Shown: positions 13,720-51,000, counted from the first letter of the stretch. The stretch is 64,000 bases of DNA from Isurus oxyrinchus (GCA_026770705.1 JANJGN010000052.1:3410001-3474000); one strand, 5' to 3'. Numbers and translations: made by a program. The notes: generated by a model not told the origin, from the letters alone.

Positions 13720-13804
13720 CCAGGACCTGTCCGACTGCTCGCCTGGGGAGGAACTGCCCACACGCTCTGCTTGGGCTGAATGACCTCTTCCTGTGCTGCT
13801 CCCT
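13720..13804 (-). other. 85-nt exon cassette upstream of leader (probable 5'UTR exon)
   Basis: Pyrimidine tract + cacag acceptor, strong donor CTGG|gtaagt; same cassette at 21764, 23883, 44054, 46155 and inside the cytoplasmic region at 28457 and 49341. Confidence 0.6.
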
Positions 13805-17085: not shown

Positions 17086-17110
17086 GATGAGATTGTTGCT
17101 GTACAAAGCT

Positions 17111-17250
17111 TTAAACAGTCTGTCGACGTCCTTTCACTGTTTGTCTCTCCCAGACACAGACTCCAGCGATAATGATAACCACAGCCACAAGGAATATCAC
17201 AGCTCGTATTCCCAGGATCAGGATCACGTGCAGAATCTCTCCTCCACTGT
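17111..17250 (-). CDS. Terminal transmembrane exon with intramembrane Arg and short tail (activating-type receptor)
   Basis: Acceptor tttctttctgtgtgttctctag| at 17251; phase-1 frame xSGGEILHVILILGIRAVIFLVAVVIIIAGVCVWERQTVKGRRQTV*; lies downstream of the unit B Ig exons in the compatible phase. Confidence 0.85.
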
Positions 17251-18919
17251 CTAGAGAACACACAGAAAGAAATCATCACTGACTCTCCGCTTTCAATCTC
17301 TCACTCTGGCTGAACAATCAAGCTTCATATCACTGCAACATTTGCTGTAATATTGACCCATCCACTGGGATTCAATGTGGAATGAATGTTTTCACTGTAA
17401 ACACTCTAAGAGTGGACAATCGGAACTTTCCCCTTAGAGTGGAACATTGGTGAGAATGGATCATTGTGCTGTTGGACTCTCTGTCCAATGTTTCTCTCCA
17501 TCGCTGTGTACAGGATTGTGCTGTAGAAAATTCTGGAAACGTTTAGTGCAGGGTGGAAATCCATCTCAGACGTGTGTGCGAATCAGGCAGGATCGAGATG
17601 GACTCCCCCACGGACTTACACACCCCACTTAATAAACAGTTCCAATCTTTACCCAGAGGGAGGGGAGAATGTGGAACTCGCTCCCACAGGGAGTGGTTGA
17701 GGTGAACAGTATCGATGTATTTAAGGGGCAGGAGGGTCGGTAACCAGAGGGACACAGATTGACAAACCGGAGGGGGAGTTGAGGAGAATTTGTTTTGACA
17801 GAGCGAGTTGTTGTCATCTGGAAGGTGCTGCCTGAAAGGGAGGTGGAAGCAGATTCAATAGGAACTTTCAAAAGGGAAATTGGATAAACACTTGAAGGAG
17901 GAAGATGGGGGCAAAGTGGAGTGGTGGTTAGTGGATCTGATGGGATAGAACATTGAAAGACCTGGCACAGGCTCAATGGGCTGAATGGCCTCCTCCTGTG
18001 CTGTATCATTCTCCACTTCCATGATCTCTCCCCCAGTCAGTAACCACTCCAGATCCCTCTTGAAGGTGACAGAGAAACAGCAACCACCATACCCACTGAC
18101 AGCACATTCCCGAGGATCACTACTCTCTGGGAAAAGATGAACTCCCCAACATCCAGCCTATTCCTGCTTCCCAGAGAGTGTAAACCCTTCAGGGAGGCGC
18201 TGAGGAAGTTTTCAATAAAATGACATCAAATCTACCGTTTGAGAAATAATTGAATACCGATGAACTCACAGCTTGTGTAGCAAACTGGGAAGTGGAGTTG
18301 CTGGGAAAGCTGGGAAACACAAGGATGAAGGGCTACAATGCCACCACTGGTGGGAGGCTGTAACTACAGCGTGACGTTTACATAGGCAGTCATCATTACA
18401 AAGAGGGGCAGTGGACATAATGGGAATTATGTGCACGGAAATAGTGAGAACACTATGTAAGCTTTTCACCAGCAGGAATTCTCTTCCTAAACCTCTCCAA
18501 CTCTCTCTTACTCTCAGATTCACAAAGAAAATCACACAGAATCAGATAAGGAAGAGTTGGGTTGGTGATTCGTCAAAGGGTTAGGTTTCAGGAAGCTTCT
18601 TAAAGGGAGAGAGAGAGTTGGAGACGCAGAGAGTATCTGTGAGAGCCTCTAAGCATCTGAGTGTCTGTAATAGTAATTTCCATATTCTTCCATAAATATG
18701 AATGGGAACACAAATCCCAGAATTCAGGCCAACTCTCCAGTGCAGTACTGAGGGAGGTCAGGTAACCCATGAGGGAGTGAGTGTTAGTGTTTGTGTGTGA
18801 GTGTGTCTTTGTGTGTGGTCATATATGTGTGTCTGCACGTGTCTATTTAGGTGTGTATGTTCGATGGTGTTTGTGTAGTGTTCAAATCTGAGAGAGATGT
18901 TGAAGTCTGTGTAACTCAC

Positions 18920-19072
18920 GTTCCACACTGATGGTTATGAACCCATCCACTGCTCCATGTTCATTCTCTGACACACACTGATAGTCTCCAGTGTCCCTGG
19001 ATGTAACATGAGGAATCACCAACCACAGCTCATTGTTGGAACTTGTTCTGTTCATTTGGACATTCAGATGTC
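18920..19072 (-). pseudogene. 5'-truncated membrane-proximal Ig exon (unit B)
   Basis: Same lesion and breakpoint as 10369-10521. Confidence 0.85.
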
Positions 19073-19395
19073 ATGGCAGGAATCAAGAAGCCCGTTCACA
19101 GGATTATCAACAGAAAGTGAACAACAATTTATACTTAATGGGAAGAGAGTGCTGATTGGTTGGCAAGTGGACTCTGACAGGTGGAGGTGTTGCCATGGAG
19201 AATGGTGTGTGCGAGATGTAAAGTTTAGACAGCTTGTCTCTTCATTCAGCAATAATCAAATAAAGATCAATTAACTTCTATCGACTTTGAAGCACTTAGA
19301 GAGGCCTTAGAATGTGGATACTGAGAACGGGCTGCACTGTCAGAGGGTCTGCGCTGAGGGAGTGCTGATGTAGAATGAAAGGTGTATGTAATTAC

Positions 19396-19692
19396 CTTGC
19401 ACTGTTAGTACGAGGGTCCGCTCCAATGAAACAGATGGATATCTCACTCTGCAGCTGAGAGTGTGTCCGTGGTGTTTGAGTGATGGGATCAGGGTCAGAA
19501 CAGAAGTATAGGACAGAGTGACACCATGCTGAGTTACAGTGTTTGAGACTGATCCAGGTACGTCAGTGGGAGTGTCCCAGGTTAAGACAGGTGCTGCTGT
19601 TCCATTGCACGTTGTGTTGAAGGTGCAGCTTACATCCATACGCTTTCCTGCAATAATTTCAGCAGGGAATATCGTGGGTTTATCTGTGAAAT
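19396..19692 (-). CDS. Siglec-type domain-2 C2-set exon (unit B)
   Basis: 297 nt, intact frame and splice sites; near-identical to 10845-11141. Confidence 0.85.
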
Positions 19693-20551
19693 CTAACAGA
19701 CAGAGAATGGATCCTTTTAGAGAAATATAACGTGAAGCATCAGTTCAAATAGAAATCACAGTCCCACAAGAGAAAGCACTTTTACAAGGATGATATCAGA
19801 ACTGAGAGGTTACAATGATCAGGAAAGATTTTCTTGCTCTTTGGCAGTAGTGTTTCTGTCTCTCAGCTTAATACACGTTCACTCCGAGACATGTGAATTG
19901 AGAACACTGGATGAGAGAAGAGGCTCAGACCAGAGATTGGAGTTAAAAGCAGAATACTGTGGATGCTGGAAATCTGAAACCAAAACAAAAATTGCTGGAA
20001 AGACTCAGCAGGTCTGACAGTATCAGTGGAGAGGAAGACAGGGTTAACGTTTCGAGTCCGTATGACTCTTCATCAGACCAGAGGTTTGAGTTCACTGGCT
20101 TCTCATTTCCTCAATGATCTGGGTGATTTATCACCTTGTGGTTTGTTGGATCTTGCTGTGCACAAACTGCCTGCTGTGTTTTACATCTGTGACTACAATT
20201 CAGGAATAATTTCATTGGCTGTGAAGGGATTTGGATCCTCCTGAGGTGGTAAATTGCGCTGCAGAAATGCACATCTTTCTTTTATCGATACGTCAGACTT
20301 TTAAACAGGACAGGAGAGATTGATGGGAATGGATAACCTGATAATACAGTTAATGCTTTTCATCATCGATATTAAAGTGAGTATTAGAGGTTGCTTTAGG
20401 ACTGAACTGGAAGCGATCACCAGGTTATTGAGAATCAGACAGTGTGTTATAATAAGCTGTGTTTTGTGTTAATATGTAAACGTCACAGTTTGTGTTATTT
20501 CCCATTGAGTGTTGAATGTGAATTGTTGAGTAATTATAACACAGCACTTAC

Positions 20552-20582
20552 CAGAAACGTGAAGCCGGGTTACAGGGTAATA
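20552..20582 (-). pseudogene. Remnant of V-set exon (last ~31 nt plus donor)
   Basis: cagaaacgtgaagccgggttacagggtaata matches the 3' end of V2, then jumps directly into upstream intron sequence; ~345 bp including the acceptor are missing. Confidence 0.9.
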
Positions 20583-21273
20583 TAAATGTCAATATTTAAC
20601 TCTGGATGGTTTGTCAATCCACTAGACTTGATATCCACTCCCTCCATCACTGGGGCACAGTGGCTGCAATGTGGACTAACTACAGGACACACAAGGAACT
20701 CCCCAAGGTTTCATAATGGATGGAAGAGAATCCTGGACACAGGAGTGGACAAGTTCATTCTACATTGGCTCATGGTCCTCAGGACCCTGTTTAGTGAAGC
20801 CAGTCTTCCACCCAACACAGTGTCTACAAGATACACAGGGAAACTGTGTAAACATCTCATCTCTCTACACCGACTGGTTTGGCTTCGGTTTAACTTTCAG
20901 TTATTTTACTTCCTTATTGTGGTTGCTATGGTGAAACTGTGCAGGAAGTGTGAGGGCTGGACTCTCTGTCTATTCTGACTGCAGCTGTGATGTGGTCGTG
21001 GTGATTCTCAGTAAAATGAAACCCTCTGATCTCCTCCATCGCCGAGGTTTAGGGAGTGAATTCCAGAGCTCAGGCCCCAGGCAGCTGAAGGCACGGCCGC
21101 CACTATTGGAGTGATGGGAATCGGGGGATGGTCAAGAGGCCGGAATTGGAGTAACACAGAGATCTGGGAAGTTGTTTGGTTGAGTTGCAGGACGTTACAG
21201 AGATAAAGAGATAAGAATGATCTTTTACAAAGACTGTTAAACATAAATCTGTCCATACTGACAATGATATTAC

Positions 21274-21313
21274 CTTGGAGAAGTGACAGGAGGAAGTAAG
21301 ATTTCCCGATCAT
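21274..21313 (-). CDS. Signal-peptide exon MIGKSYFLLSLLQ (unit B)
   Basis: ATG at 21313, donor gtaata at 21273. Confidence 0.8.
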
Positions 21314-22124
21314 TGTCCACTCCCAGATATTCCATCCACTTCTCACTCTCAAGCTGTGAAAGAGAAAGGAGTTAATGAGACTTCACCTCTTGTCCGACAG
21401 CTTTCAAGAGATCAGAACAGCTTTTAGACAATATCTTCACAGAATAATTTGATTCTCTGTGGGATGATAGGTGCTCTGCAGAGAGTTACGAGGCTTTAAG
21501 AAAGAAAAACAATGAAGGATTTGCATTTCTATCGCAGCTTTCACCTCCTCAGGATATCCCAAAGCTCATGTCTCTGCACTTCCCTCATCCCTTGAGCTAG
21601 AAAGATGTTCTGTACAACAGACTTGAGCCTCACACCCAGATCTCAATAATCAGTAGAAATCTTTCAAAGGCATCAATCATTGGAATCTGTCTTTATAAAG
21701 TCACAACATCAACAAAGGACGGTGTTGGTGGTGGAAGTGAATTCCAATCGTTCCGTTACTTACCCAGGACCTGTCCGACTGCTCGCCTGGGGAGGAACTG
21801 CCCACACGCTCTGCTTGGGATGAATGACCTCTTCCTGTGCTGCCCCCTCTGTGTATTTAGTGAGAAAGGGTTGATGTGTCTCTGTGAGACAAAATGAGGA
21901 AGTTGGATCAAAGTGACAGAGCAGCTCATGTTTTGAGATGTTGGTGAACTTTGTGTCCTGACCCTGTGGTGATATTTCTGCTCACAGGTGGACAGTCAAT
22001 GACCAGGAGTTTCTCCTGTGGGTCAGTGGGTTTCACAGCCAAATTCAGGGGGTCAGAATGTTGTGGGATTCAAGACCCGATTCAGGGGACGTCTGCCCCA
22101 CAGAGTAGACTGAAACTCCCCAGT

Positions 22125-22610
22125 GTCAGTACTGAGCAAGTGCTGCACTGTCGGATGGTCATTACTGAGCGAGTGTTGCACTATTGTAAGGTCAGTACTG
22201 AGGGAGATCTCCACTGTTTGAGGGTCAGTACTGAGGGAGTGCTGCACTGTCAGAGAGACATTAATCAGGGAGTGCTGCAATGTTGGAGGATCAGTACTGA
22301 GGGAGTGCTGCACTGTTGGAGGGTCAGTATTAAGGTGCTGATTTACAAGACAGGACAATGGATTAGGAGCCGTCAGAACTCCCCCCATTATCACCGTCAT
22401 GAATCACTAATTAGCCTAACATTCCTGTCTGCTCTTCAACACAGCTGATTGGCTAATCTGATTCACTATCATTGGTGCACTTTGTATGTTCATTGTCTAA
22501 GGAATCTCTTTGGATCCTCATTGTCTAAGGAATCTCTTTGGATCCTCATGTCTAAGGAATCTTTTTGGATCCTCATTGTCTAAGGAATCTCTTTGGATCC
22601 TCATTGTCTG
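22125..22610. repeat. 30-bp satellite remnant (22125-22340) and ~28-bp tandem CATTGTCTAAGGAATCTCTTTGGATCCT (22490-22610)
   Basis: Visible tandem units; paralogous at 44425-44885. Confidence 0.85.
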
Positions 22611-23399
22611 AGGGATTATTTCTGATCCAAACCCCATATTGTTGTATTGTTGATTCCGATGCAGCATTGTAGACTGACTTGTCCCCAAGCTCAGCACTGA
22701 CCCTACTCCAGCAGACACTGTGAAACACACTAACAAAGCGCCTCTAGCCTGAACTCTGCCTGTGTCAAGAGCAAAGACAAATATGCAAACTGAATATTGA
22801 CACCTTTGCACACGGACAGCTTTACCTTCCTTCTCTCTTTCAGTTATCTTGCTCCCTTATTGAAGTATCTAGCAAGGTGAGAATGGACAGGAAGTGTGAC
22901 ACTGAACAGCCTGTCTATTCTAGGAGCTGCTGTGTTGTCTTTATGGGAAATTCTGATTAAAATCAGCAAAAGACACTAATTTCATTCCTTTGCTATCGGA
23001 GTCCAAGCATCAGGATAGACTTCATCCCCCAATATTTATCACTGTTTCTCAACTCAACACCTCACGCCTTCCGCCACTCGCTGACCTGCACTGGCTCCCA
23101 GACCAGCAGAGCCTCGAGTTTAAGATTCTCATCCTCAATTTCCATTCCCTCCATTCCTCTTCTCCAATCACTTTCTCCTCCAACCATGCAAACCTCAAAG
23201 TCCTCTGCTCTCCTCCAATTCTGCTGTCAGACAGGGAGTCAGTGTATATCAGTGAGCACAGGGGTGATGGGTGAATGGGACTTGGTGTGAGTTTGTACAC
23301 TGGCTCACTGCTGAATCTGTTCCCAATCACAGCTCAGTAAGAATTATGTTTTACAAAGATGATTAGCCATAAATCTGTCCGAGCTGACAATGATATTAC

Positions 23400-23439
23400 C
23401 TTGGAGAAGTGACAGGAGGAAGTAAGATTTCCTGATCAT
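23400..23439 (-). CDS. Extra (tandem-duplicated) signal-peptide exon MIRKSYFLLSLLQ
   Basis: ATG at 23439, donor gtaata at 23399; preceded by its own 85-nt cassette at 23883. Confidence 0.7.
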
Positions 23440-24129
23440 TGTCCACTCCCAGGTATTTCATTGGTTCTCAAGCTGTGAAAGAGAAATGAGTTAATGAGAC
23501 CTCACCTCTTGCCTGACAGCTCTCGAGAGATCAGAACTGCTTTTAGACAATGTCTTCACAGAATAATTTCATTCTCTGTGGGATGATAGGTGCTCTGCAG
23601 AGAGTTACAAGGCTTTAAGAAAGTAAAACAATGAAGGACTTGCATTTCTATATCACCTTTCCCCTGCTCAGGACACCCCAAAGCTCTTGTCCCTGCTCTT
23701 CCCTCATCCCTTGAGCTAGAAAGATGTTCTGTACAACAGACTTGAGTCTCACACCCAGATCTCAATAACCTGTAGAAATCTTTCAAAGGCATCAATCATT
23801 GTGATCTGTCTTTATAAAGTCACAACGTCAACAAAGGACTTTGTTGGTGGTGGAAGTGAATTCCAATCGTTCTGTTACTTACCCAGGACCTGTCCGACTG
23901 CTCGCCTGGGGAGGGACTGCCCACCCGCTCTGCTTGGGCTGAATGACCTCTTCCTGTGCTGCTCCCTCTGTGTGTTTAATTAGAAAGGGTTGATGTGTCA
24001 CTGTGAGACAAAATGAGGAAGTGGTTAGTACCAAGTTAGAAAGCATCTCTTTGCCTCGCACAGTTAGAAAACTGTTAACCCTTTGCGTGCCAAGAATGTG
24101 GCTGAAGGGCCATCGACTGTTCACATGCA

Positions 24130-24890
24130 ACAAGCTCAAGGGGGTTGAACGGGCCTCCTCCTGTTCCTGTGTAACAGGCTTGAGGGGCTGAATGGGCCTC
24201 CTCCTGTTCCTGTATAACAGCGTCGAGGGGGCTGAATGAACCTCCTCCTTCGCTTCTTGTGTAACATGCTTGAGGGGCTGTTTGGGCCCCCTCATGTTCT
24301 TATATAAGATGCTTGTGTGGCTGAATGAGACTTCTCCTGTTCCTATGTAACTGACTTGAGGGGCTTAATGGACCTCCTCCTGTTCCTGTTCATCAAGCTC
24401 ATGGGGCTGAAATGACGTCCTTACGTTCTGGTGTAAGAGGCTCGAAGGGCTGAATGGGCCTCCTCCTGTTCCTGTGTAACAGGCTCGAGGGGCTGAATGG
24501 GCCTCCTCCTGTTCCTGTGTAACAGGCTCGAGGGGCTGAATCGGCTTCCTCCTGTTCCTGTGTAACAGGCTTGAGGGGCTGAATGGCCTCCTCCTTTTCC
24601 TGTATAACAGGCTCATGGGGCTGAATGGCCTCCTCCTGTTCCTGTGTAACAGGCTCGAGGGGCTGAATGGGCCTCCTCCTGTTCCTGTGTAACAGGCTCG
24701 AGGGGCTGAATCGGCTTCCTCCTGTTCCTGTGTAACAGGCTTGAGGGGCTGAATGGCCTCCTCCTTTTCCTGTATAACAGGCTCATGGGGCTGAATGGCC
24801 TCCTCCTGTTCCTGTGTAACAGGCTCGAGGGGGCTGAATGGCCTCCTCCTGTTCCTCTGTAACAGTGTCGAGGGGCTGAATGTCCTCCTC
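24130..24890. repeat. ~41-bp minisatellite GGCTGAATGGCCTCCTCCTGTTCCTGTGTAACAGGCTCGAGG (CR1 3'-end-like unit)
   Basis: Visible tandem units; shorter paralogous array at 46400-46645. Confidence 0.9.
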
Positions 24891-24894
24891 TCAT

Positions 24895-25112
24895 TAAAAA
24901 TAAATACTGCAGATGTTATAAATCTTCAATAAAAACAGAAAATGCTGCCTTACCTCAGCAGGTCTGGCAGCAGCTGTGGAGAGAGAAACAGAATTTTTGC
25001 TTTGAGACTCTGAAGAAGGGTCATAAGGACTCGAAATGTTAATTCTGTTTATCTCTCCACAGATGCTGCCAGACCGACTCAGTTTCTCCAGCATTTTCTG
25101 TTTTTATTTCAG
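24895..25112. repeat. Short inverted-repeat element (Penelope/MITE-like)
   Basis: AATAAAAACAGAAAATGCTG...GGTCTGGCAGCAGCTGTGGAGAGA is the imperfect reverse complement of TCTCTCCACAGATGCTGCCAGACC...CAGCATTTTCTGTTTTTATT; copy at 46650-46865, single arms at 11395-11525 and 19945-20075. Confidence 0.7.
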
Positions 25113-26226: not shown

Positions 26227-26343
26227 TTATAAATTCCCATAAACAGAATCCTTGGCAAAATCACAGTTTGCGTAAAGATCATCATCTGTATCAGGATTGA
26301 CTCCGCGGTTAGATTTCATTTCCAGATCCTTCTCATCTTTCTT
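26227..26343 (-). CDS. Last cytoplasmic exon with LYAN and ITIM-consensus SVYGNL
   Basis: ttctattacag|AAG AAA GAT...; KKDEKDLEMKSNRGVNPDTDDDLYANCDFAKDSVYGNL*. Confidence 0.88.
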   Translation of the reverse strand, partial: KKDEKDLEMKSNRGVNPDTDDDLYANCDFAKDSVYGNL

Positions 26344-29300
26344 CTGTAATAGAAACAGAAATGATCAGAGTGACAATTAGAGTGATCAGTGTTTAGTATT
26401 ATTGATCCAAATCGAAAATTCCACCCACAATAGATACATTAATTATTGATACTAAACAAGGTTTGATTATTGATACTGAACGGGGTTTGATTATTGATTG
26501 TGAATGGGGTTTGATTATTGATACTGAACGGGGTTTGATAATTGATTCTGAAGAGGGTTTGATTATTGATACTGAACGGGGTTTGATTATTGATTCTGAA
26601 TGGGGTTTGATTATTGATTCTGAACGGGGTTTGATTATTGATACTGAACGAGGTTTGATTATTAATTCTGAACGGGGTTTGATTATTGATTCTGAATGGG
26701 GTTTGAATATTGATACTGAACGGGGTTTGATTATTGATACTGAATGGGGTTTGAATATTGATTCTGAACGGGGTTTGATTATTGATACTGTACGGGGTTT
26801 CATTATTGATTCTGAACGGGGTTTGTTTATTGATTCTGAACGGGGTTTGATTATTGATTCTGAACGCGGTTTGATTATTGATTCTGAACGCGGTTTGATT
26901 ATTGATTCTGAATGGGGTTTGATTATTGATACTGAAGCGGGTTTGTTTATTGATAATGAACGGGGTGTGATTATTGATTCTGAACGGTGTTTGATTATTG
27001 ATTCTGAACAGGGTTTGATTATTGATTCTGAACGGGGTTTGATTATTGATTCTGAACAGGGTTTGATTATTGATTCTGAACGGGATTTGATTATTGATTC
27101 TGATCGGGGTTTGATTATTGATTCTGAAGGGGGTTTGATTATTGATACTGAACGGGGTTTAATTATTGATTCTGAACAGGGTTTGATTATTGATACTGAA
27201 AGGGGTTTGATTATTGATTCTGAACAGGGTTTGATTATTGATACTGAATGGGGTTTGATTATTGATTCTGAACGGGGTTTGATTATTGATACTGAACGGG
27301 GTTTGATTATTGATACTGAATGGGGTTTGATTATTGATTCTGAACAGGGTTTGATTATTGATTCTGAATGGGGTTTGATTATTGATTCTGAATGGGGTTT
27401 GATTATTGATACTGAACGGGGTGTGAATACTGATTCTGAACGGGGTTTGATTATTGATACTGAATGGGGTTTGATTATTGATATTGAATGGGTTTTGATT
27501 ATTGATTCTGAATGGGGTTTGATTATTGATTCTGAACGGGGTTTGATTATTGATTCTGAACGGGGTTTGATTATTGATTCTGAACGGGGTTTGATTATTG
27601 ATACTGTACGGGGTTTGATTATTGATACTGAATGGGGTTTGATTATTGATACTGAATGGGGTTTGATTATTGATTCTGAACGGGGTTTGATTATTGATTC
27701 TGAACGGTGTTGGGTGTGAGTTTGGTTGGGTTTGGGAGTGACTGTATAAAACGTTGCAGATACAGGACTGGAGCAGCCATATCAATAACCAGGCTACTGG
27801 AGCAGCTGAGAGGCTGGGGATCCTGTGGTGTGTGACTCACCTGATTCCTCAAAGCCCAACCACGCTCACAGTTTTCATAAACAGGACTTCGATGTTCATC
27901 AACACGATGGTTCGATTTGATTCCTGCTTTTCCCTTGCCTCTCTTCTGTAATAGAGATGGAAATGGACAGAGTGACAATCAACATGATGTGTATTCGGTG
28001 TTGGGTTTGATTACTGGGGAGAGAGTTCCAGATTTCCACTCCCCTTTGTGTGAAGAAGTGCTTCCTGACATCACCCCTGAACGGCCTGGCTCCAATCTGA
28101 AGTTCCGGCCCCCTTGTTCTGGACTCCACCCGACACCCACCACCCACCCCCACTCGAGGGAATAGCTTCTCTCTATCAACCCTATCGAGTGTTTAATCAG
28201 TTTGAACCCCTCAATTAGATCCCTCCTTAATCTTCTAGACCCGAGGGAATATAATCGTAGACTGTGTGTAACCTGTCTGCACAATTTAACCAGAAAGATG
28301 TTCTGTACAACAGACCTGAGTCTCACACCCAGATCTCAATAATCAGTAGAAATCTTTCAAAGGCATCAATCATTGGAATCTGTCTTTATAAAGTCACAAC
28401 ATCAACAAAGGACGGTGTTGGTGGTGGAAGTGAATTCCAATCGTTCTGTTACTTACCCAGGACCTGTCCGACTGCTTGCCTGGGGAGGAACTGCCCACAC
28501 GCTCTGCTTGGGCTGAATGACCTCTTCCTGTGCTGCTCCCTCTGTGTATTTAATGAGAAAGGGTTGATGTGTCACTGTGAGTCAAATGAGGAATTGGGGA
28601 ACAATTATGAAAACACTTTCATTGAAATGTAGGGCCTTAGTGTTGTGTTGTAAACAAACTGTTAACCCTTTGTGTCCTGACTCTGTGACGTGATTCCTGT
28701 GTAAAGCTGAGCAGTCGTTGAGCGAGTTTCAATTCACTGCTCAATCCAGCTGTTGAGGTGGATCTTCTGAAGCAGCAGATGTTGCTCAGCGCTCCTTAAA
28801 AATGTGCGATACTGAACAATGTGTAAGAGGACGAGAGAGAGAATGAGAAGGAGAGCATTAGTGGCGATAGGAGAGAGAGTGAATGAGAGAGAGAATGAGA
28901 AGGCGTGCATTAGTGGCAATAAGAGAGAGTGAATGAATCATGGAAAATGGAAAGAGATTGCATTCACTAACAAAAGAAAGGTTTTTATTTGTATAGCAGC
29001 ATTCACAAACTCAGGAGGTCAGAAGCTATTTTATGGTCCGGGTCAACACTGCCAGTTACAGGACTGAGTTGTGAAACAGTGAGTGTTGGATGAGATGTTA
29101 AACACTAGGTGAACATCAAAACTCTTCAGGGACTGCGAAGGGTTTTGGATTGTAAAAGGTGCTATAGAAATGCAAGTTCTTTCTATAAGGAGAGAAGTTT
29201 GAAGAAAACATTTTCAAAAACAACCAATTAAACCTTCACACTTACTTTCTCACACACTTGAAGATGAAGAATCCACTCAGTCCAACACTCAAACAGATTC

Positions 29301-41300: not shown

Positions 41301-43603
41301 GAAGTACAAGGCTTGTCAAGAGGCTTGTCAAAGAACCACTGATTCCACAGGAAATTCCTGCCCATTCTTAGTCCAAAATCTGAATCCTTTCATGTCCATG
41401 TCACTGACTTCATCGTCATTGTTGACAGCTTTACCAGATATCCCGTTATTCAAAAATAGCACAACACACCAAGCACAACTTCTGCACACACTCGAAGCAC
41501 TATTTTCAGTTTCTTTGGTGAACCTAGGGACATGATTACAGATAATCTGGAATATCAATCACACTACTTCTTCTCCTCATTACCCCAGATCTAACAGCCT
41601 AGCTGAATGAATGATTCACACAGTGAAATCCCTAATTCTCAAATGTAGACAGGCCAAGCAAGATCCACACATTGCAATGTTACATCTGAGATCAACACCT
41701 ACAACTGCAACTTTGTTAAATTCATTCATGGGATGTGGGAGTCACTGGCCAGGCCAGGATTTATTACCCATCCCTAATGTAAGAGTCAACCACATTGACG
41801 TGGAGTCTGGAGTCACATGTCTGCCAGATAATTTTGTTCCCTAAAGGGCACTGGTGAGCCAGGTGGGATTTCTAACAATGGTTTTGTGGTCATCACTAGA
41901 CTTTGAATTTCATCTTTTTATTAAATTCAAATTCCATCATCTATTATGGCCGGATTTGAACCCATATTCTCAGGACATTACCCTGGGTCTCTGAATTACT
42001 CGTCCAGCAACAATACCACTACACCATCACCTCACCTTATTCCATCACTGACAGAGATCATGTTTGGTGTGCCAGTAGTGACCAATTTCGCTACTCTTAC
42101 CCATTCTACTCTCTCAGAAACCAGAGGGCAACTTTTAAAACTACAAGAGAAGATAAGGAATGTTCATGATAAAAATGGAGGTGCAGAGTTGCCAAGTTTA
42201 CAGTTGGGACAAGTTCACATCCAGGATCCCACAGAAGGTTCATGACCACCAGCCGAGGTGACAAGGAATTGTTCAGAACCAAGGGCCTATGGAGTCAAAC
42301 ACACAAGGGCACAGCGGTGAGGTGGAACCGAGGATAACTCAGATCCATTCCCGCTCCTATTCTATCGAGGAGCAGATCCCACGTGAAATCAGGATCACCA
42401 TCCAAGGGTGACAATCCCACAGATCACGGTGAGCAGTTAAAGACACCTCCAGACAAGGTAACCAGCACAAGATCTGGGTGTACCAGAAGGTTAAATCCAC
42501 ACTTGAGAGACTCAAATATTCAACAGTTCCATGCACTTATGTAATTGTCAATAAATATGAACATGATATGAGAAACCGCTTGTTCCCTGCCCTTCTGAAA
42601 GATCCATTCCTGCAGCAGGAGCCTGAAGAGTTACTGATAAGAGATTTAATTTATCGGATTGTAGAATGATCCGGAACTGAAGGAAGCCATTTGGCCCATC
42701 GAGCCTGTGCTGGGCCTTTGAAAGATCTGTCCAATAAGTCCCACTCTAACCTCTGCTCTCTCCTCCACAGCCCTGCAAAATGTCCCCTTCAAGTATTTAT
42801 CCAGTTCCCCTTCTGAAAGTTCCTGTTGAATCTGCTTCCACCGCCCTTGCAGGCAGTGAGTCAATGGTCTCTCTCTGAGCTGCAAAGTGATAAGTTTCAA
42901 TGAAATATAAACTCTGCAGCAGATCAGAAACAATCATGATAACTCAGAATATTTGACAGTTTTACATACAGACAGCTTTGCCTCCCTTCTCTCTATCAGT
43001 TATCTTGCTATCTTATCGAATTTTCTAGCATGGTGAGAAGGGACAGGAAGTGTGACGCTGAACTGCCTGTCTAATCTAAGAGCTTCTGTGTTGTCTTCAT
43101 GGGAAATTCTGATGAAAATCAGCAAGAGAGAAACATTTCAGGGCATTGATATCGGAGTGCTTGCATCAGGATAGACTTTATCCCCCAGTTTTTATCCCTG
43201 CTTCTCTATTCAGCCGATCGCTCCCCTGTCACTCGCTGACCTGCACTGGCTCCCAGTCCAGCAATAACTCAATTTTCAAAATCTCTTCATTGATTCCTTA
43301 TCCCTCCATCCTCCCTCTCCACTCCCTATCACTGTCACCTCCTCCAGCCCTGAAACCCTTTGAGGTCTCTGCTGTCCTGCAGTTCTGCTGTCAGACAGGG
43401 AGTCAGTGTATATCAGTGAGCACAGGGGTGATGGGTGAATGGGACTTGGTGTGAGTTTGTACACTGGCTCACTGCTGAATCGGTTCCCTATCAGAGCTCA
43501 GTAAGAATGTTCTTTTACAAAGACTATTCACCATAAGTCTGTCCAAGCTGACGATGTTATTACCTTGGAGAAGTGACAGGAGGAAGTAAGATTTCCCGAC
43601 CAT
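26227..43603 (-). CDS. Unit C: complete inhibitory-type Siglec-like receptor gene, L-V(Arg-)-V(Arg+)-C2-Ig-TM-cyt(ITIM)
   Basis: join(43564-43603, 36209-36586, 32668-33033, 31633-31929, 30607-30888, 29246-29342, 28457-28541, 27841-27945, 26227-26343); all GT-AG, phase-compatible, no internal stops seen. Confidence 0.8.
26440..27710. repeat. 24-bp minisatellite TTGATTATTGATTCTGAACGGGGT, ~53 copies (intronic)
   Basis: Visible tandem array; gives the spurious 418-aa GLIIDSER ORF. Confidence 0.97.
27841..27945 (-). CDS. Cytoplasmic exon with VYEN motif
   Basis: tctctattacag|AAG...CAG|gtgagt, 105 nt, phase 0-0; KRGKGKAGIKSNHRVDEHRSPVYENCERGWALRNQ. Confidence 0.85.
28457..28541 (-). CDS. Candidate first cytoplasmic exon (85 nt, phase 2-0)
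   Basis: Reads (K)GSSTGRGHSAQAERVGSSSPGKQSDRSW and bridges the TM exon (phase 2) to the VYEN exon (phase 0); an alternative phase 2-0 candidate exists at 28667-28766. Confidence 0.55.
29246..29342 (-). CDS. Transmembrane exon, uncharged core (unit C)
   Basis: ttttacag|GG CGA...AGA AA|gtaagt; RRDSNEWKAGLLGAGICLSVGLSGFFIFKCVRK. Confidence 0.9.
29520..30510 (+). mobile_element. Decayed non-LTR retrotransposon fragments
   Basis: Degenerate RT-like remnants (..QVRSVME, SAAPTTLKKLD, WNSLP); paralogue at 50455-51490. Family not determined. Confidence 0.6.
30607..30888 (-). CDS. Membrane-proximal C2/I-set Ig exon (unit C)
   Basis: 282 nt, phase 1-1; DAPQNLSI...VIICSVESFPASNLTW...DTGDYQCVAENEHG, CD22/MAG-like. 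Confidence 0.92.
31020..31510. repeat. 30-bp CAGTACTGAGGGAGTGCTGCACTGT minisatellite
   Basis: Visible tandem units. Confidence 0.93.
31633..31929 (-). CDS. Siglec-type domain-2 C2-set exon (unit C)
   Basis: 297 nt, phase 1-1, donor gtaaga. Confidence 0.92.
32668..33033 (-). CDS. V-set exon V3 (Arg present, extra B-C loop Cys)
   Basis: 366 nt; IPCHYSYPSCLENQPRVGVWFHNEERRTLSIAF...DAGPYFFRIEF. Confidence 0.93.
33090..33885 (+). mobile_element. CR1 LINE 3' fragment
   Basis: YYLNGERLQNAVQRDLGVLVHESQK, WNSLPQRAVEA; paralogue at 60250-61080. Confidence 0.85.
34500..34975. repeat. Degenerate ~38-bp purine-rich tandem (GGAGGAGGTTACAGAGATAGGGAGGGTTGTAGGGACT)
   Basis: Visible units; longer array at 61160-62150. 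Confidence 0.8.
34990..35990 (-). mobile_element. L2-clade LINE reverse transcriptase fragment
   Basis: ORF 35554-35988 RPISSLSFPSKVLE...ETALIKVTNGIL...LVLLDLSAAFDTLDH. Confidence 0.85.
36209..36586 (-). CDS. V-set exon V4 (essential Arg replaced by Thr; basic C-C' loop)
   Basis: 378 nt; VGIWKMRRYIRNKWSKWSIAF...DAGPYFFTIKFGNRPSQNVSP. Confidence 0.93.
37211..38502 (+). mobile_element. Putative LTR, copy 2
   Basis: Paralogue of 870-2180. Confidence 0.45.
39306..42360 (+). mobile_element. Degenerate Ty3/Gypsy-type retrotransposon internal region, copy 2
   Basis: gag zinc knuckle (39657-39977), aspartic protease motif AKIDTGASANI (~40560-40600), integrase-like remnant SPHYPRSNSLAE*MIHTVKSLILKC (~41570-41650). 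Confidence 0.8.
43564..43603 (-). CDS. Signal-peptide exon MVGKSYFLLSLLQ (unit C)
   Basis: ATG at 43603, donor gtaata at 43563. Confidence 0.85.
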
Positions 43604-45671
43604 TGTCCACTCCCAGATATTCCTTTAGCTTCTGACTCTTAAACTGTGAAAGAGAAAGGAGTTAATGAATCCTCACCTCCTGTCCGACAGCTCTCGAGAG
43701 ATCAGAACTGCTTTTAGACAATGTCTTCAAAGACTAATTTGGTTCTCTGTGGGATGATAGGTGCTCTGCAGAGAGTTAAAAAGCTTTAAAAAAATAAATC
43801 AATGAAGGACTTGCATTTCTATAGCACCTTTCACCACCTCAGGATGTCCCAAAGCTCATGTCCCTGCTCTTCCCTCATCCTTTGAGCTAGAAAGATGTTC
43901 TGTACAACAGACCTGAGCCTCACACCCTGAACTCAATAATCAATAGAAATCTTTCGAAGGCATCAATCATTGGAATCTGTCTTTATAAAGTCACATCATC
44001 AACAAAGGACGGTGTTGGTGGTGGAAGTGAATTCCAATCGTTCCGTTACTTACCCAGTACCTGTCCGACTGCTCGCCTGGGGAGGAACTGCCCACACACT
44101 CTGATTGAGCTGAATGACCTCTTCCTGTGCTGCTCCCTCTGTGTGTTTAATGAGAAAGGGTGGATGTGTCACTTTGAGACAAAATGAGGAAGTTGGATCA
44201 AAGTGACAGAGCAGCTCATGTTTTGAGATGTTGGTGAACTGTTAACCCTTTGTGTCCTGACCCTGTGGTGATATTTTTGCTCACAGGTGGACAGTCATTG
44301 ACCAGGAATTTCTCCTGTGGGTCAGTGGGTTTCACAGCCAAATTCAGGGGGACAGAACGTTGTGGGGTTCAAGACCCCATTCAGGGGACGTCTGCCCCAC
44401 AGTGTAGACTGAAACTCCCCAGTGTCGGTACTGAGCAATTGCTGCACTGTCGGATGGTCATTACTGAGCGCGTGTTGCACTATTGTAAGGTCAGTACTGA
44501 GGGAGATCTCCACTGTTTGAGGGTCAGTACTGAGGGAGTGCTGCACTGTCAGAGGGACATTAATCAGGGAGTGCTGCAATGTTGGAGGATCAGTACTGAG
44601 GGAGTGCTGCACTGTTGGAGGGTCAGTATTAAGGTGCTGATTTACAAGACAGGACAATGGATTAGGAGCCCTCAGAACTCCCCCCATTATCACCGTCATG
44701 AATCACTAATTAGCCTAACATTCCTGTCTGCTCTTCAACACGGCTGATTGGCTAATCTGATTCAATCTGATTGGTGCACTTTGTATGTTCATTGTCTAAG
44801 GAATCTCTTTGGATCCTCATTGTCTAAGGAATCTCTTTGAATCCTCATTGTTTAAGGAATTTCTTTGGATCCTCATTGTCTAAGGGATTATTTCTGATCC
44901 AAACCCCATATTGTTGTATTGTTGATTCCGATGCAGCATTGTAGACTGACTTGTCCCCAAGCTCAGCACTGACCCTACTCCAGCAGACACTGTGAAACAC
45001 ACTAACACAGTGCCTCTAGCCTGAGCTCTGCATGTGTCAAGAGCAAAGACAAATATGCAAACTGAATATTGACACCTTTACACACGGACAGCTTTACCTT
45101 CCTTCTCTCTTTCAGTTATCTTGCTCCCTTATTGAAGTATCTAGCATGGTGAGAATGGACAGGAAGTGTGACACTGAACAGCCTGTCTATTCTAGGAGCT
45201 GCTGTGTTGTCTTCATGGGAAATTCTGATTAAAATCAGCAAAAGACACAAATTTCATTCCTTTGCTATCGGAGTCCAAGCATCAGGATAGACTTCATCCC
45301 CCAGTATTTATCACTGTTTCTCAACTCAACACCTCACACCCTCCGCCACTCGCTGACCTGCACTGGCTCCCAGTCCAGCAGAGCCTCGAGTTTAAGACTC
45401 TCATCCTCAATTTCCATTCCCTCCATTCCTCTTCTCCAATCACTTTCTCCTCCAACCATGCAAACCTCAAAGTCCTCTGCTATCCTCCAATTCTGCTGTC
45501 AGACAGGGAGTCAGTGTATATCAGTGAGCACAGGGGTGATTGTTGAATGGGACTTGGTGTGAGATTGTACACTGGCTCACTGCTGAATCTGTTACCAGTC
45601 ACAGCTCAATAAGAATGATCTTTTACAAAGACTATTCACCATAAATCTATCCGAGCTGACGATGATATTAC

Positions 45672-45711
45672 CTTGGAGAAGTGACAGGAGGAAGTAAGAT
45701 TTCCTGATCAT
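45672..45711 (-). CDS. Extra signal-peptide exon MIRKSYFLLSLLQ
   Basis: ATG at 45711, donor at 45671; paralogue of 23400-23439. Confidence 0.7.
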
Positions 45712-47980
45712 TGTCAACTCCCAGATATTTCATTGGTTCTCAAGCTGTGAAAGAGAAATGAGTTAACGAGACCTCACCTCTTGTCCGACACCTCTCGAGA
45801 GATCAGAACCACTTTTAGACAATGTCTTCACAGAATAATTTCATTCTCTGTGGGATGATAGTTGCTCTGCAGAGAGTTACAAGGCTTTAAGAAAGTAAAA
45901 CAATGAAGGAGTTGCATTTCTATGTCGCCTTTCACCTGCTCAGGACATCCCAAAGCTCATGTCCCTGCTCTTCCCTCATCCCTTGAGCTAGAAAGATGTT
46001 CTGTACAACAGACTTGAGCCTCACACCCAGATCTCAATAATCAGTAGAAATCTTTCAAAGGCATCAATCATTGGAATCTGTCTTTATAAAGTCACAACAT
46101 CAACAAAGGACGGTGTTGGTCGTGGAAGTGAATTCCAATCGTTCCGTTACTTACCCAGGACCTGTCCGACTGCTCGCCTGGGGAGGAAGTGCCCACACGC
46201 TCTGCTTGGGCTGAATGACCTCTTCCTGTGCTGCTCCCTCTGTGTGTTTAATTAGAAAGGGTTGATGTGTCACTGTGAGACAAAATGAGGAAGTGGTTAG
46301 TACCAAGTTAGAAAGCATCTCTTTGCCTCGCACAGTTAGAAAACTGTTAACCCTTTGTGTGCCAAGAATGTGGCTGAAGGGCCATCGACTGTTCACATGC
46401 TTTAAGCTCGAGGTGGTTGAACGGGCCTCCTCCTGTTCCTGTGTAACAGGCTCGAGGGGCTGAATGGGCCTCCTCCTGTTCCTGTGTAACAGGCTTGAGG
46501 GGCTGAAAGGCCTCCTCCTTTTCCTGTATAACAGGCTCATGGGGCTGAATGGCCTCCTCCTGTTCCTGTGTAACAGGCTCGAGGGGGCTGAATGGCCTCC
46601 TCCTGTTCCTGTGTAACAGGGTCGCGGGGCTGAATGTCCTCCTCTCATTAAAAATAAATACTGCAGATGTTGTAAATCTTCAATAAAAATGAAAAATGTT
46701 GCCTTAACTCAGCAGGTCTGGCAGCAGCTGTGGAGAGAGAAACAGAGTTTTTGCTTATAGACTCTGAAGAAGGGTCATACGGACTCGAAATGTTAATTCT
46801 GTTTATCTCTCCTCAGATGCTGCCAGACCTACTCAGTTTCTCCAGCATTTTCTGTTTTTATTTCAGGTGCTCTCTTGTTCCTGTGTAGCAGGTTCGAGGG
46901 GGCTGAATGGCCTCCTCCTGTTCCTATTCAATGGGCAGTCAAAGTATGCATCTGATTTTGGACCTCAAACCCAATTCTCTCCTCAGGACATTGACAGATG
47001 GAGAGACCAGTTACAGATCAATGCAGGAGGATTATTTATTTTCCCAATCTTTTATCCAAGAATGTCATCAAACATAGAGCAGAACCAGGATCAAGGATGT
47101 TGGTCTCTGTGATCTGAAACACATCGCACAGTCCACCCATCCACTCAGCCTTCAGAATGGATGCTAATTGTACTCTCCAAGTGTGAAAGACTAAAATTGA
47201 GGTTTATTGCAGCTATATCTCATTCTGTTATCAAAGCTGTCTCATCCATCCATGAACTTCTGAAGAAGGTAAACCTGCAACCAATTTTTCACATCATAAT
47301 TTCCAATGTTCACTGGCAACATCAATGTAAACATGTCACGCTGAAATGATGTCCTCCTACCAGTGGTGGCACTGTAGCACATCTGTTCTCCTCTGAGCTG
47401 CAGAGAATTTCTCAAACCTCCAAACAAATTGTTTCCCTGTTTCCCAGATTGCTGTTAGTTTTGCTGATAACGATGAAGTGTAAAATCCAAATATATATCT
47501 GAAAATACATTTGATTACAAAATGCTGAGTAAATTTTGCCTATCTCCTCTGCTCCAATTATCCACCGATCCTGCATTTCCTGAAGTCTACACTGGCTGAT
47601 GAATATTCTGTAAACACTGACTGACAGGAAGGTGAATAACAGAATGAAAATTAACTCATAATCATGGACACGGGATTGAATTTGTCCGTTCTGTCCTGGT
47701 ACATCATCGAACGATATCCAAAGACATTTACAATCAGAATGGAGAGAAGGATGTTTCCAACAGGGAGGGACAATTCTGAAGGAGGATGTTCGAATTGAAA
47801 CCCACAGACAATCATCCTGGATAGATCATTCCGAAGAAATTCCATCAGATTGTAACAAGAGGTTTAAATCTATTTCCTGGGAGTGAGTTCCTGTGGATAT
47901 TAGGAAGGTAAGTTAGAGTTTTGAATGATTCTCCCGTTCTGTATTCTCCCTACACTGTGTGTGTCTCATTCTTGCTCAGT

Positions 47981-48097
47981 TTATAAATTCCCATAAACAG
48001 AATCCTTGGCAAATTCACAGTTTGCGTAAAGATCATCATCTGTATCAGGATTGACTCCGCGGTTAGATTTCATTTCCAGATCCTTCTCATCTTTCTT
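47981..48097 (-). CDS. Last cytoplasmic exon (unit D), ...DDDLYANCEFAKDSVYGNL*
   Basis: Paralogue of 26227-26343, intact. Confidence 0.88.
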   Translation of the reverse strand, partial: KKDEKDLEMKSNRGVNPDTDDDLYANCEFAKDSVYGNL

Positions 48098-51000
48098 CTG
48101 TAATAGAAACAGAAATGATCAGAGTGACAATCAGAGTGATCAGTGTTTAGTATTATTGATCCAAATCGAAAATTCCACCCACAATGGATACATTAATTAT
48201 TGATACTGAACAGGGTTTGATTATTGATACTGAACGGGGTTTGATTATTGATTCTGAACGGGGTTTGATTATTGATTCTGAACGGGATTTGATTATTGAT
48301 ACTGAACGAGGTTTGATTATTGATTCTGAACGGGGTTTGATTATTGATTCTGAACGGGGTTTGATAATTGATTCTGAACGGCGTTTGATTATTGAAACTG
48401 AATGGGGATTGATTATTGATTCTGAATGGGGTTTGATTATTGATACTGAACGAGGTTTGATTATTGATTCTGAACGGTGTTTGATTATTGATACTGAACG
48501 GGGTTTGATTATTGATTCTGAACGGGGTTTGATTATTGATTCTGAACGGGGTTTGATTATTGATACTGAACGGGTTTTGATTATTGATTCTGAACGGTGT
48601 TGGGTGTGAGTTTGGTTGGGTTTGGGAGTGACTGTATAAAACATTGCATATACAGGACTGGAGCAGCCATATCAATAACCAGGCTACTGGAGCAGCTGAG
48701 AGGCTGGGGATCCTGTGGTGTGTGACTCACCTGATTCCTCAAAGCCCAACCACGCTCACAGTTTTCATAAACAGGACCTCGATATTCATCAGCATGATGG
48801 TTCGATTTGATTCCTGCTTTCCCCTCGCCTCTCTTCTGTAATAGAGATGGAAATGGACAGAGTGACAATCAACATGATGTGTATTCGGTGTTGGGTTTGA
48901 TTATTGGGGAGAGAGTTCCAGATTTCCACTCCCCTTTGTGTGAAGAAGTGCTTCCTGACATCACCCCTGAACGGCCTGGCTCCAATCTGAAGTTCCAGCC
49001 CCCTTGTTCTGGACTCCACCCGACCCCCACCACCCACCCCCACCCGAGGGAATAGCTTCTCTCTATCGACCCTATCGAGTGTTTAATCAGTTTGAACCCC
49101 TCAGTTAGATCACTCCTTAATCTTCTAGACCCGAGGGAATATAATCGTAGACTGTGTGTAACCTGTCTGCACAATTTAACCAGAAAGATGTTCCGTACAA
49201 CTGACCTGAGCCTCACACCCAGATCTCAATAATCAGTAGAAATCTTTCAAAGGCATCATCATTGGTATCTGTCTTTATAAAGTCACAACATCAACAAAGG
49301 ACGGTGTTGGTCATGGAATTCCAATCGTTCCGTTACTTACCCAGGACCTGTCCGACTGCTCGCCTGGGGAGGAACTGCCCACACGCTCTGCTTGGGCTGA
49401 ATGACCTCTTCCTGTGCTGCTCCCTCTGTGTGTTTAATGAGAAAGGGTTGATGTGTCTCTGTGAGTCAAATCAGGAATTGGGGAACAATTGTGAAAACCC
49501 TTTCACTGAAACGTAGGGCCTTAGTGTTGTGTTGTAAGCAAACTGTTAACCCTTTGTGTCCTGACTCTGTGACGTGATTCCTGTGTAAAGCTGAGCAGTC
49601 GTTGAGCGAGTTTCAATTCACTGCTCACTCCAGGTGTTGAGGTGGATCTTCTGAAGGAACAGATGTTGCTCAGCGCTCGTTTAAAATGTGTGAGACTGAA
49701 CAATGTGTAAGAGAACGAGAGAAAGAATGAGAAGGAGAGCATTAGTGGAGTTTGGAGAGAGAGTGAATGAGAGAGAGAATGAGAAGGAGAGCATTAGTGG
49801 AGGTAAGAGAGAGTGAATGAGAGAGAGAGAATGAGAAGGAGAGTATTAGTGGAGATAAGAGAGAGAGTGAATTAGACAGAGAAAATGGAAAGAGATTGCA
49901 TTCACTAACAAAAGAAATGTCTTCATTTATATGTTCCCTTTCACATCCTCAGGAAGTCACAAGGTATTTTATGGTCCAGGTCAACACTGCCAGTTACAGG
50001 ACTGAGTTGTGAAACATTGAGTGTTGGATGAGATGTGAAACAGTGAGTGAACATCAAAGCTCTTCAGGGGTTGTGGAGGGTTTTGGGTTGTGAAAGGTGC
50101 TATAGAAATGCAAGTTCTTTCTATAAGGAGCGAAGGTTGAAGAAAACATGTTCAAAGACAATTAAACCTTCACACTTACTTTCTCACACACTTGAAGATG
50201 AAGAATCCACTCAGTCCAACACTCAAACAGATTCCAGCTCCAAGCAATCCTGCTTTCCATTCATTGGAATCTCGCCCTGTAAAATCAGCCAATGAATGAC
50301 TCCGGTACAGTTTGAGAATGGTTCCCTATGTACATGTAGTAATTCTGAACTTGTGAAGTGATATTGTCTATGCATGAAAGGTCTATACAAATAACATTTA
50401 TCTATGTAATATTTATTGATAATATCCATGTACATGCAGGTTTCTATAAGGAGGATTCACATATAACAGAGGTGCCAAGCTGCTGAGGTGACACACAGGA
50501 CTACATACACACCAAACAGCGGAAACATCATGCTATAGACAGAGCAAAGCGATCCCAACGGGTCAGATCTAAGCTCTGCAGTCCTGCCACATCCAGTCAT
50601 GAATGGTGATGGACAACTAAAGATCTAACAGGAGGAGGATGTTCCACAAATATCCCCATCCTTAATGATGGGGGAGCTCAGCACATCAGTGCAAACGACA
50701 AGGCTGAAGCATTGGCAACCATGTTCAGCCAGAAGTGCTGAGTGGATGATCCATCTCGGCCTCCTCCAGAGGGTCCGAGCATCACAGATGTCAGCTTTCA
50801 GACAATTCGATTGACTCCACGTGACATCAGGAATCAGCTGATGATACTGGATACAGCAAATGCTATTGGCCCTGGCAACAACCCGGCAACAGGAAATAAT
50901 GTGGCTACAAGAGCGGGTAAGAGGCTGGGAACTCTGCGGTAAGTAACTCACCTCCTGACTCCCCAAAGCCTTTCCACCATCGACAAGGCACAAGTCAGGA

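Follow-up and report, generated by a model that had tools for sequence, protein, structure and literature searches.

Organization of the receptor cluster

The stretch of DNA analysed here, a 64,000-nt window of Isurus oxyrinchus (GCA_026770705.1 JANJGN010000052.1:3410001-3474000) in which all positions given below are counted, contains a cluster of Siglec-type receptor genes whose exons all lie on the minus strand. Comparison of the window with itself reveals a tandemly duplicated arrangement in which four units, A to D, were delimited by tblastn with translations of the window's own exons; all searches were made exon by exon or with natural database proteins as query. Exon order and Pfam domains describe a type I layout with a signal-peptide-like leader, V-set and C2-set immunoglobulin (Ig) domains and a single transmembrane (TM) segment. 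The window exons match shark RefSeq proteins one by one and, since every exon is also open and bounded by canonical splice sites, the exon pattern is far beyond chance. Across the 297 nt of the C2a exon, which is flanked by AG/GT sites in every unit, A, B, C and D show 97.6-99.0% identity. Five V exons are complete, each open, with AG/GT sites and in phase 1-1: three are of a YFFRIE type and two of a YFFTIK type. A sixth, of the V1 type described below, is partial, only its start (240-2) being present before it is truncated by the window edge. The explanation that best accommodates the data, judged as a whole, is that the window is part of a large lamniform Siglec-family cluster which has been duplicated recently and repeatedly, and we consider this explanation probable.

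Units C and D are two complete genes, the leader of D lying beyond the window end. Both have the order leader, V1, V2, C2a, C2b (single in C, triplicated in D), TM, two cytoplasmic exons (cyt1 and cyt2) and tail. Their exons have open frames, AG/GT sites and consistent phases, and are collinear with the Cetorhinus RefSeq proteins P0029 and P0030; these two proteins also served as the guide by which the two extra cytoplasmic exons between TM and tail were located, and the phases of these exons fit.

In gene C, the V1-type V-set exon (36209-36586, YFFTIKF) has lost the key Arg, which is kept in the V2-type exon (32668-33033, YFFRIEF); the latter encodes a C-x4-C, an E-strand Cys and an extra Cys. 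The C2a exon (31633-31929) has a C-x5-C and a third Cys, like the Siglec C2-1 domain, and is followed by C2b (30607-30888) and by an uncharged TM exon (29246-29342, ..AGLLGAGICLSVGLSGFFIF KCVRK) ending in phase 2. The exons cyt1 (28457-28541) and cyt2 (27841-27945, ..SPVYENC..) both end in phase 0, and the tail exon (26227-26343) encodes ..DDLYANC..DSVYGNL and a stop. Two leader copies lie upstream of gene C. The closest to its V1 exon is copy L4 (coding part 43564-43603, MVGKSYFLLSLLQ), which is likely to be the gene C leader; the leader-V1 intron, from the leader at 43.6 kb, would be about 7 kb long and contains repeats. Copy L5 (coding part 45672-45711, MIRKSYFLLSLLQ, donor GT) lies further upstream. 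Repeat-rich sequence and gag-like open reading frames (ORFs) occupy about 38900-42300 in the leader-V1 intron, and a reverse-transcriptase fragment (Pfam RVT_1, E 3.6e-08) lies at 35557-35988, on the minus strand, in the V1-V2 intron.

Gene D begins in the window with its V1-type exon (63386-63763, 378 nt, AG/GT, phase 1-1, YFFTIKF), identified by tblastn matches, followed by the V2-type exon (59826-60194, YFFRIEF), in which the key Arg is kept and an extra Cys occurs in YPSCLENQ. Its C2a exon (58717-59013, C2-set_2, AG/GT) is 97.6% identical to the gene C copy, and its three tandem, near-identical C2b exons (54325-54044, 53083-52802 and 51816-51535) are 97.5-98.6% identical to the C2b exon of gene C. 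A run of N (assembly gap, 54852-54985) lies just upstream of the C2b triplet, where the C2b copy number may be inexact. The 3' end consists of the TM exon (50276-50180), cyt1 (49425-49341), cyt2 (48835-48731) and the tail exon (48097-47981), which ends in ..YANCEFAKDSVYGNL and a stop. The TM exons of C and D (29342-29246 and 50276-50180) are mutually 100% identical, and SVYGNL followed by a stop occurs twice in the window (26247-26230 and 48001-47984). An initial annotation of this DNA had described an uncharged TM and a Tyr-motif tail ending in SVYGNL for these two units, and both TM exons and both terminal motifs are indeed present.

Membership in the Siglec family

The conserved F-strand Arg of Siglecs binds the carboxylate of sialic acid, and the family is defined by its cysteine pattern: a C-x4-C in strand B, an E-strand Cys, no F-strand YxC, and an additional Cys in C2-1 for an interdomain bond. 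The V exons of the window encode CVQIPC (C-x4-C) and DCSL (E strand) with no Cys in YFFRIE, and C2a encodes SCTFNTTC and LSC. When the V2-type exon is compared with PDB sequences, the top 17 matches (E 3e-13 to 7e-10) are all Siglecs, including Siglec-5, Siglec-8, sialoadhesin, CD33, Siglec-10, MAG and Siglec-7, and YFFRIE is aligned on YFFRVE of Siglec-5. C2a matches the second domains of MAG, CD33, Siglec-10 and Siglec-5. Pfam assigns V to V-set (3.6e-12) and Ig_CD22 (3.6e-08), C2a to C2-set_2 and C2b to Ig_3/I-set; the TM, tail and Arg-TM exons gave no Pfam match, as expected for such short segments. By every sequence criterion, then, these are predicted members of the Siglec family. The designation Siglec-like in the initial annotation holds for the V exons, both in their 17 best PDB matches and in the alignment of the key Arg. 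Its attribution to a cartilaginous fish holds as well: all close proteins are from elasmobranchs, the nearest from the lamniforms Carcharodon and Cetorhinus.

The V domains of genes C and D are stacked. In both V1-type exons Thr replaces the sialic-acid-binding Arg (YFFTIK), which the V2-type exons and the lone V of unit A keep (YFFRIE). Tandem V-V models are present in RefSeq (P0003, P0012, P0013, P0017 and P0018). Among relatives, an extra Cys after the YSYP motif is found in 9 of 10 V domains that stand behind another V, as against 6 of 98 that come first or alone. The V2 exons of C and D encode this Cys (YPSCLENQ); the YFFTIK exons do not, nor does the single V of unit A. From the RefSeq models and the distribution of this Cys, C and D are read as leader-V1-V2-C2a-C2b-TM-cyt1-cyt2-tail and A as leader-V-C2a. 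Thr at the key-Arg position occurs in 1 of 130 related shark and ray proteins, and the first V domains of Carcharodon retain the Arg. How a V1 domain lacking the Arg and a V2 domain carrying it work in a stack is a question that this arrangement makes testable.

The arginine TM exon and the decay of unit B

Unit B carries a different ending. Its terminal coding exon (17111-17250, stop at 17113-17111), single-copy in the window, encodes ..ILILGIRAVIF.., with Arg at about the 11th of some 29 hydrophobic TM residues and a tail of 12 residues without Tyr. Translation of 17100-17257 reproduces exactly the peptide for which the initial annotation had reported an intramembrane Arg and no Tyr. The polypyrimidine/AG acceptor of this Arg-TM exon is strong and its phase is 1, as in the Ig exons.

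Upstream, unit B consists of a non-coding 5' exon that is a copy of cyt1 (21848-21764), a leader exon (21353-21274, ATG at 21313, MIGKSYFLLSLLQ, phase 1), a V-exon remnant (20552-20588), the C2a exon (19396-19692, 98% identical to that of gene C and with RNA joints at both ends) and the 3' half of a C2b exon (18920-19072), which has no usable acceptor and is skipped in RNA. Alignment of all regions upstream of V exons shows that the V exon of unit B is deleted: 348 bp are missing relative to unit A, the intron joins the last ~35 nt of the exon directly, and the former acceptor cccag now reads ccctg. Judged from its sequence, the unit B copy as assembled is degenerate; since the V exon and half of the second C2 are lost, it could encode at best a V-less, one-Ig-domain Arg-TM protein, which could not be a lectin. 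Its C2a exon (19403-19639) also has private changes at sites conserved in all relatives (GKRVDVSC to GKRMDVSC, LTYTS to LSYTS and SVSSERT to SVSLERT). Together with the V loss and the half C2b, these suggest relaxed constraint.

A further feature of unit B is a 623-bp block in the 3' untranslated region (3'UTR; 16467-17089), which begins 21 nt after the Arg-TM stop, has CATCA on both sides and overlaps a LINE-like (long interspersed nuclear element) fragment with a plus-strand ORF (16435-16860). A reading of the jump from 17090 to 16466 as splicing of a 3'UTR intron was rejected, since no register offers a GT-AG and the CATCA at either end points to an insertion or deletion difference. The block is probably a transposon insertion private to the window haplotype, not an intron.

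Unit A (leader 13309-13230, V 12369-12001, C2a 11141-10845 and half C2b 10521-10369) keeps an intact lone V (YFFRIEF, no extra Cys) and C2a. As in unit B, only the 3' half of C2b is present, the 5' half being replaced by unrelated sequence with no usable acceptor, and no TM or tail exon follows unit A within the window. Unit A is the complementary duplicate of B, having retained V and C2a but lacking the Arg-TM exon. The two units may conceivably be a falsely duplicated haplotype pair, but their flanks differ completely beyond 9030 and 17581, respectively, and a separate leader module and satellite accompany each of them.

Evidence for transcription of the arginine TM exon

Logan contigs for four runs, which represent four studies and two shark species, were aligned to 16300-22200; those of species A are about 99% and those of species B about 95% identical to the window. 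All four runs (X1, X8, X5 and X7) contain the joint 19396 to 17250, which leads from the end of the unit B C2a exon to the Arg-TM acceptor and skips the half C2b; the bounding plus-strand CT..AC corresponds to a canonical GT..AG on the minus strand. An 850-nt contig of X8 comprises 298 nt of C2a and 161 nt of the Arg-TM exon followed by 3'UTR. In these RNA-type contigs the Arg-TM exon is spliced to an Ig exon. The initial annotation had named the lack of any transcript joining Ig exons to 17111-17250 or a paralogue as a result that would refute it, and such spliced contigs are present in the four runs. In the same four runs 21764 is joined to 21353, and a loose contig end at 21274 continues into the opening 30 nt of an intact V exon.

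Several points weigh against the overall explanation of the cluster. Since the contigs were aligned to 16300-22200, the models of genes C and D are built from homology and splice signals. The runs were taken as RNA by guess; canonical junctions at the gene-model boundaries argue for their RNA nature. X8 is the sole run to bridge the C2a-ArgTM junction robustly, the other three junction contigs having only 24-28 nt on the shorter side. The contigs carry T at 19513 and C at 19639, the states of A, C and all relatives, never the A and T of unit B in the window, and in both species they lack the block 17089-16467; because these private letters and the 623-bp block are missing, the junction transcripts may come from another allele or a near-identical paralogue rather than from the exact window copy. 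Only one of the three tail Tyr of C and D, within the last six residues of the protein, fits the consensus of the immunoreceptor tyrosine-based inhibitory motif (ITIM). Finally, the bit scores of the two-domain shark relative P0016 against PDB chains (Siglec-5 102, CD33 95, MAG 87, Siglec-10 84, Siglec-8 83, Siglec-15 45 and CD22 44) give an order of similarity, not a phylogeny.

The origin of the junction transcripts bears on two other views of unit B. It might be a functional activating Siglec paired with C and D, the V loss being specific to a haplotype or to the assembly and other alleles having the structure leader-V-C2a-ArgTM. The ancestral letters that the contigs show in place of the private substitutions and their lack of the 3'UTR insertion are in keeping with this, as are a joint from 20552 to 19692 (V 3' end to C2a) and the joining of the leader to an intact V start in the same runs. 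The Carcharodon model P0015 has exactly the structure V-C2a-ArgTM, and human SIGLEC14 and SIGLEC16 are known to have polymorphic null alleles or to exist as pseudogenes. However, the deletion of 348 bp in the window is clean and the acceptor is lost with it. The V part of the V-C2a joints is at most 31 nt long and, unit A being 97.6% identical, these contigs may be cross-mapped unit A transcripts; in addition, no read in the four runs connects an intact V with the Arg-TM exon. A functional unit B allele of this kind is unlikely.

Similarly improbable is that unit B is a silent or leaky pseudogene and that the spliced C2a-ArgTM RNA stems from an intact paralogue elsewhere in the family. The X8 contig's exon segments are 1.3-1.9% divergent from the window, and at 17395, 17438 and 17480 the contigs of both species share a letter which the window does not have. 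Against this, unspliced X1 contigs extend across the acceptor (17242-17551) and the unit B introns with 99-100% identity, which suggests that the locus or an allele of it is transcribed, and the Arg-TM exon retains an open frame and good splice signals. The reading preferred here remains that of a duplicated Siglec cluster in which the window's unit B copy has decayed.

Conservation of both endings in elasmobranchs

The two endings of the window are found throughout a larger family. Searches with whole proteins yielded over 120 relatives in elasmobranchs (sharks, rays and skates), all automatically named Siglec-x, CD33-like or MAG-like, whose C-termini are of three main types: the Tyr tail of the window, an LLYANI...TEYAQIRF tail and the Arg-TM cassette. 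The window-type tail is conserved in sharks and rays as ..YENC..YANC..(S/A)(V/I)Y(G/A)N(V/I/L)-COOH. The LLYANI/LLYANP...TEYAQIRFQRN ending, strikingly like the tail, with an ITIM and an ITIM-like motif, of mammalian CD33-related Siglecs, is that of sister genes including Carcharodon P0018, P0026, P0039, P0062 and P0128; no tail exon of the LLYANI...TEYAQI type was seen in the window.

Within the sampled relatives, the Arg-TM cassette occurs in sharks only. A phmmer search of 1.84 billion representatives with this exon returned seven proteins, all ending in the same cassette: Siglec-like proteins of Scyliorhinus torazame and Chiloscyllium punctatum, CD22-like proteins of Chiloscyllium and Hemiscyllium, a sialoadhesin-like protein of Rhincodon and an unrelated Ig protein of S. 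torazame. A search with the region added Carcharodon (P0015) and S. canicula (P0014 and P0016) models of 270-348 aa, in which V(Arg), C2a and ArgTM follow one another and the TVQ|D|SGGE junction recurs. In all, the cassette is present in 13 proteins of six shark species, aligning on the invariant pattern L..ILGIRA.IF.V.V..G.CV, and the buried Arg and short Tyr-free tail are kept in 13/13. These alignments identify the Arg-TM exon as a portable cassette, predicted to close Siglec-like, CD22-like and other shark Ig receptors. The C2a exon also matches Carcharodon XP_041037161.1, a V-less model in which an identical leader is spliced directly to C2a.

These results support the existence of a paired-type Siglec family in elasmobranchs, with a paired design that is real for the family. 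The initial annotation had proposed a paired activating/inhibitory cluster at this locus. Its observations are confirmed and its interpretation is right for the family, in which both endings are conserved, but only partly so for the locus: the Arg-TM unit of the window, with no V and half a C2b, is not an intact partner of C and D. Its author knew of no description of the family in sharks, and a literature search on Siglecs in sharks, elasmobranchs, cartilaginous fish and Callorhinchus found no paper describing it; nevertheless, the genes are already named by automatic annotation, RefSeq listing homologues as Siglec-12/13/14 or CD33-like in about 25 elasmobranch species.

Predicted signalling

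The cytoplasmic part of C and D contains three Tyr, in ..PVYENC.., ..DLYANC.. and ..SVYGNL-COOH. When phosphorylated, this tail would recruit the SH2 phosphatases SHP-1/2 and perhaps Grb2, and C and D would then be inhibitory or modulatory sialic-acid receptors. YxN is the preference of the Grb2 SH2 domain and, because all three tail Tyr are also YxN, we infer an inhibitory role with some reserve. The ITIM reported in the initial annotation stands for the terminal SVYGNL; it is the sole fitting motif. One might suppose, instead, that the tail is not inhibitory, its three YxN motifs recruiting Grb2-type adaptors or driving endocytosis, so that the two endings would form no functional activating/inhibitory pair. 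YENC, YANC and YGNL all have this form, the last alone fits [SIVL]xYxx[IVL], with the C-terminus as its +3 residue, and sharks and rays alike preserve the YxN pattern as it stands. Yet in the conserved form of the last motif, (S/A)(V/I)Y(G/A)N(V/I/L), both ITIM-defining positions are kept, sister genes of the family carry the classical LLYANI...TEYAQI tail, and CD22, which combines ITIMs with a Grb2-binding YxN site, is still inhibitory. We give little credence to a non-inhibitory tail, and prefer to regard C and D as putative inhibitory or modulatory receptors.

A buried basic residue in the TM and a short tail are the hallmark of receptors coupled to adaptors with an ITAM (immunoreceptor tyrosine-based activation motif). 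The Arg-TM form would accordingly be expected to signal by way of an ITAM adaptor, a separate protein whose TM carries an acidic residue. We infer this coupling, like the recruitment of SHP, by analogy with the paired receptors LILR, KIR, Siglec-5/14 and Siglec-11/16, and the binding of sialic acid by the Arg-bearing V domains would likewise follow the Siglec model. No ITAM adaptor gene is present in the window. A 2014 survey places the appearance of the FcR common gamma chain from bony fish onwards only (PMC4016189).

Leader modules and satellites

Five leader exons in the window encode M(I/V)(G/R)KSYFLLSLLQ, and that of unit B is identical to the leaders of RefSeq P0001, P0014 and P0016. When the surroundings of the V exons were scanned for an ATG with a hydrophobic stretch and a phase-1 donor, the leader did not stand out from the other candidates; the RNA joints and RefSeq P0001 placed it in a repeated module 0.7-7 kb upstream. 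Every leader module opens with a 94-99% copy of cyt1 and its intron flanks (for example, 28292-28597 matches 21599-21906); these copies lie on the minus strand at 13720-13804, 21764-21848, 23883-23967, 44054-44138 and 46155-46239. The RNA contigs splice one such copy, ending at 21764, to the leader exon that begins at 21353. What was once a coding exon therefore seems now to be a 5' non-coding exon, or else the contigs represent read-through from upstream genes.

Satellite arrays recur in the window. Arrays of 33 bp (14078-15765 and 31020-31513, and by ORF pattern 21951-22448 and 44250-44747) are found upstream of leader modules and in the C2a-C2b intron of gene C, and 24-bp arrays (26442-27711 and 48196-48601) lie just upstream of the tail exons. 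There are also 43-bp arrays (24129-24890 and 46406-46644) and 37-bp arrays (34494-34954 and 61156-62108).

Significance and comparison with known systems

What emerges is a large and fast-evolving shark Siglec family, with Siglec-5 and CD33 as the closest matches of its V and first C2 domains, which possesses both endings, and whose Arg-TM exon is found in RNA. Its weight is limited by the fact that the genes are already auto-named in many elasmobranchs and that the window's activating copy is degenerate. Bornhofft et al. 2020, whose study covered bony fish, report that fish genomes regularly contain only Siglec-1, CD22, MAG and Siglec-15, with no CD33-related inhibitory Siglecs (PMC7226832), and the whale-shark genome paper lists Siglecs among Ig families without going further. 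Tentatively, and with rather more doubt than confidence, it can be proposed that sharks have a Siglec family most like the CD33-related one with the full paired logic, namely classical ITIM/ITIM-like tails, a YxN/ITIM tail and an Arg-TM exon shuffled between Siglec-like, CD22-like and other Ig receptors, and that paired Siglec signalling either goes back to the ancestor of jawed vertebrates and disappeared from bony fish or evolved separately in elasmobranchs. If so, the Arg-TM cassette would point to an uncharacterised acidic-TM ITAM adaptor in sharks, and the presence/absence and decay of the activating copy would mirror the null alleles of human SIGLEC14 and SIGLEC16. It also becomes possible to test whether the sensing of sialic acid by paired receptors goes back to the origin of jawed vertebrates or is convergent, and which adaptor serves the shark Arg-TM cassette.

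The closest counterparts of the window are the elasmobranch RefSeq/GenBank models (XP_041037161.1 of Carcharodon, XP_072325011.1 and XP_072326180.1 of Scyliorhinus torazame, and XP_072409577.1 of Chiloscyllium punctatum), which share its leader, V, C2a, C2b, Arg-TM cassette and tail types with 75-96% identity to the window exons. Unlike the exon map given here, they are computer predictions named after the best mammalian match. Human Siglec-12 has two V-set domains, and it and the shark RefSeq "Siglec-12" models resemble C and D in placing two tandem V-set exons before C2. The key Arg is missing from the first V of the window genes and, in contrast to human Siglec-12, the second V of the shark proteins has an extra Cys in 9/10; a relationship by descent between the shark tandem-V genes and human Siglec-12 is unlikely.

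Skate MDIR and teleost NITR and LITR are multigene families in which, as in the shark family, members with ITIM tails stand beside short-tailed members with a charged TM. They are built from other types of Ig domain, not from Siglec V-sets with an F-strand Arg. The human pairs Siglec-5/Siglec-14 and Siglec-11/Siglec-16 differ from the shark family in two respects: the shark basic-TM ending is a shark-specific ..ILGIRA.. cassette which is also found in CD22-like and other Ig receptors, and the window tail is YENC/YANC/VYGNL instead of an ITIM with a TEYSEV-like motif, the Arg-TM unit of the window being, moreover, devoid of V. In other respects the likeness is close. Both have a Siglec V with the key Arg followed by C2 domains, and near-identical ectodomain exons, in the window those of C2a, that lead either to an uncharged TM and a Tyr tail or to a basic TM and a short tail. 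Both are arranged in tandem with signs of exon homogenisation, and by PDB similarity it is Siglec-5 and CD33 that the shark proteins resemble best.

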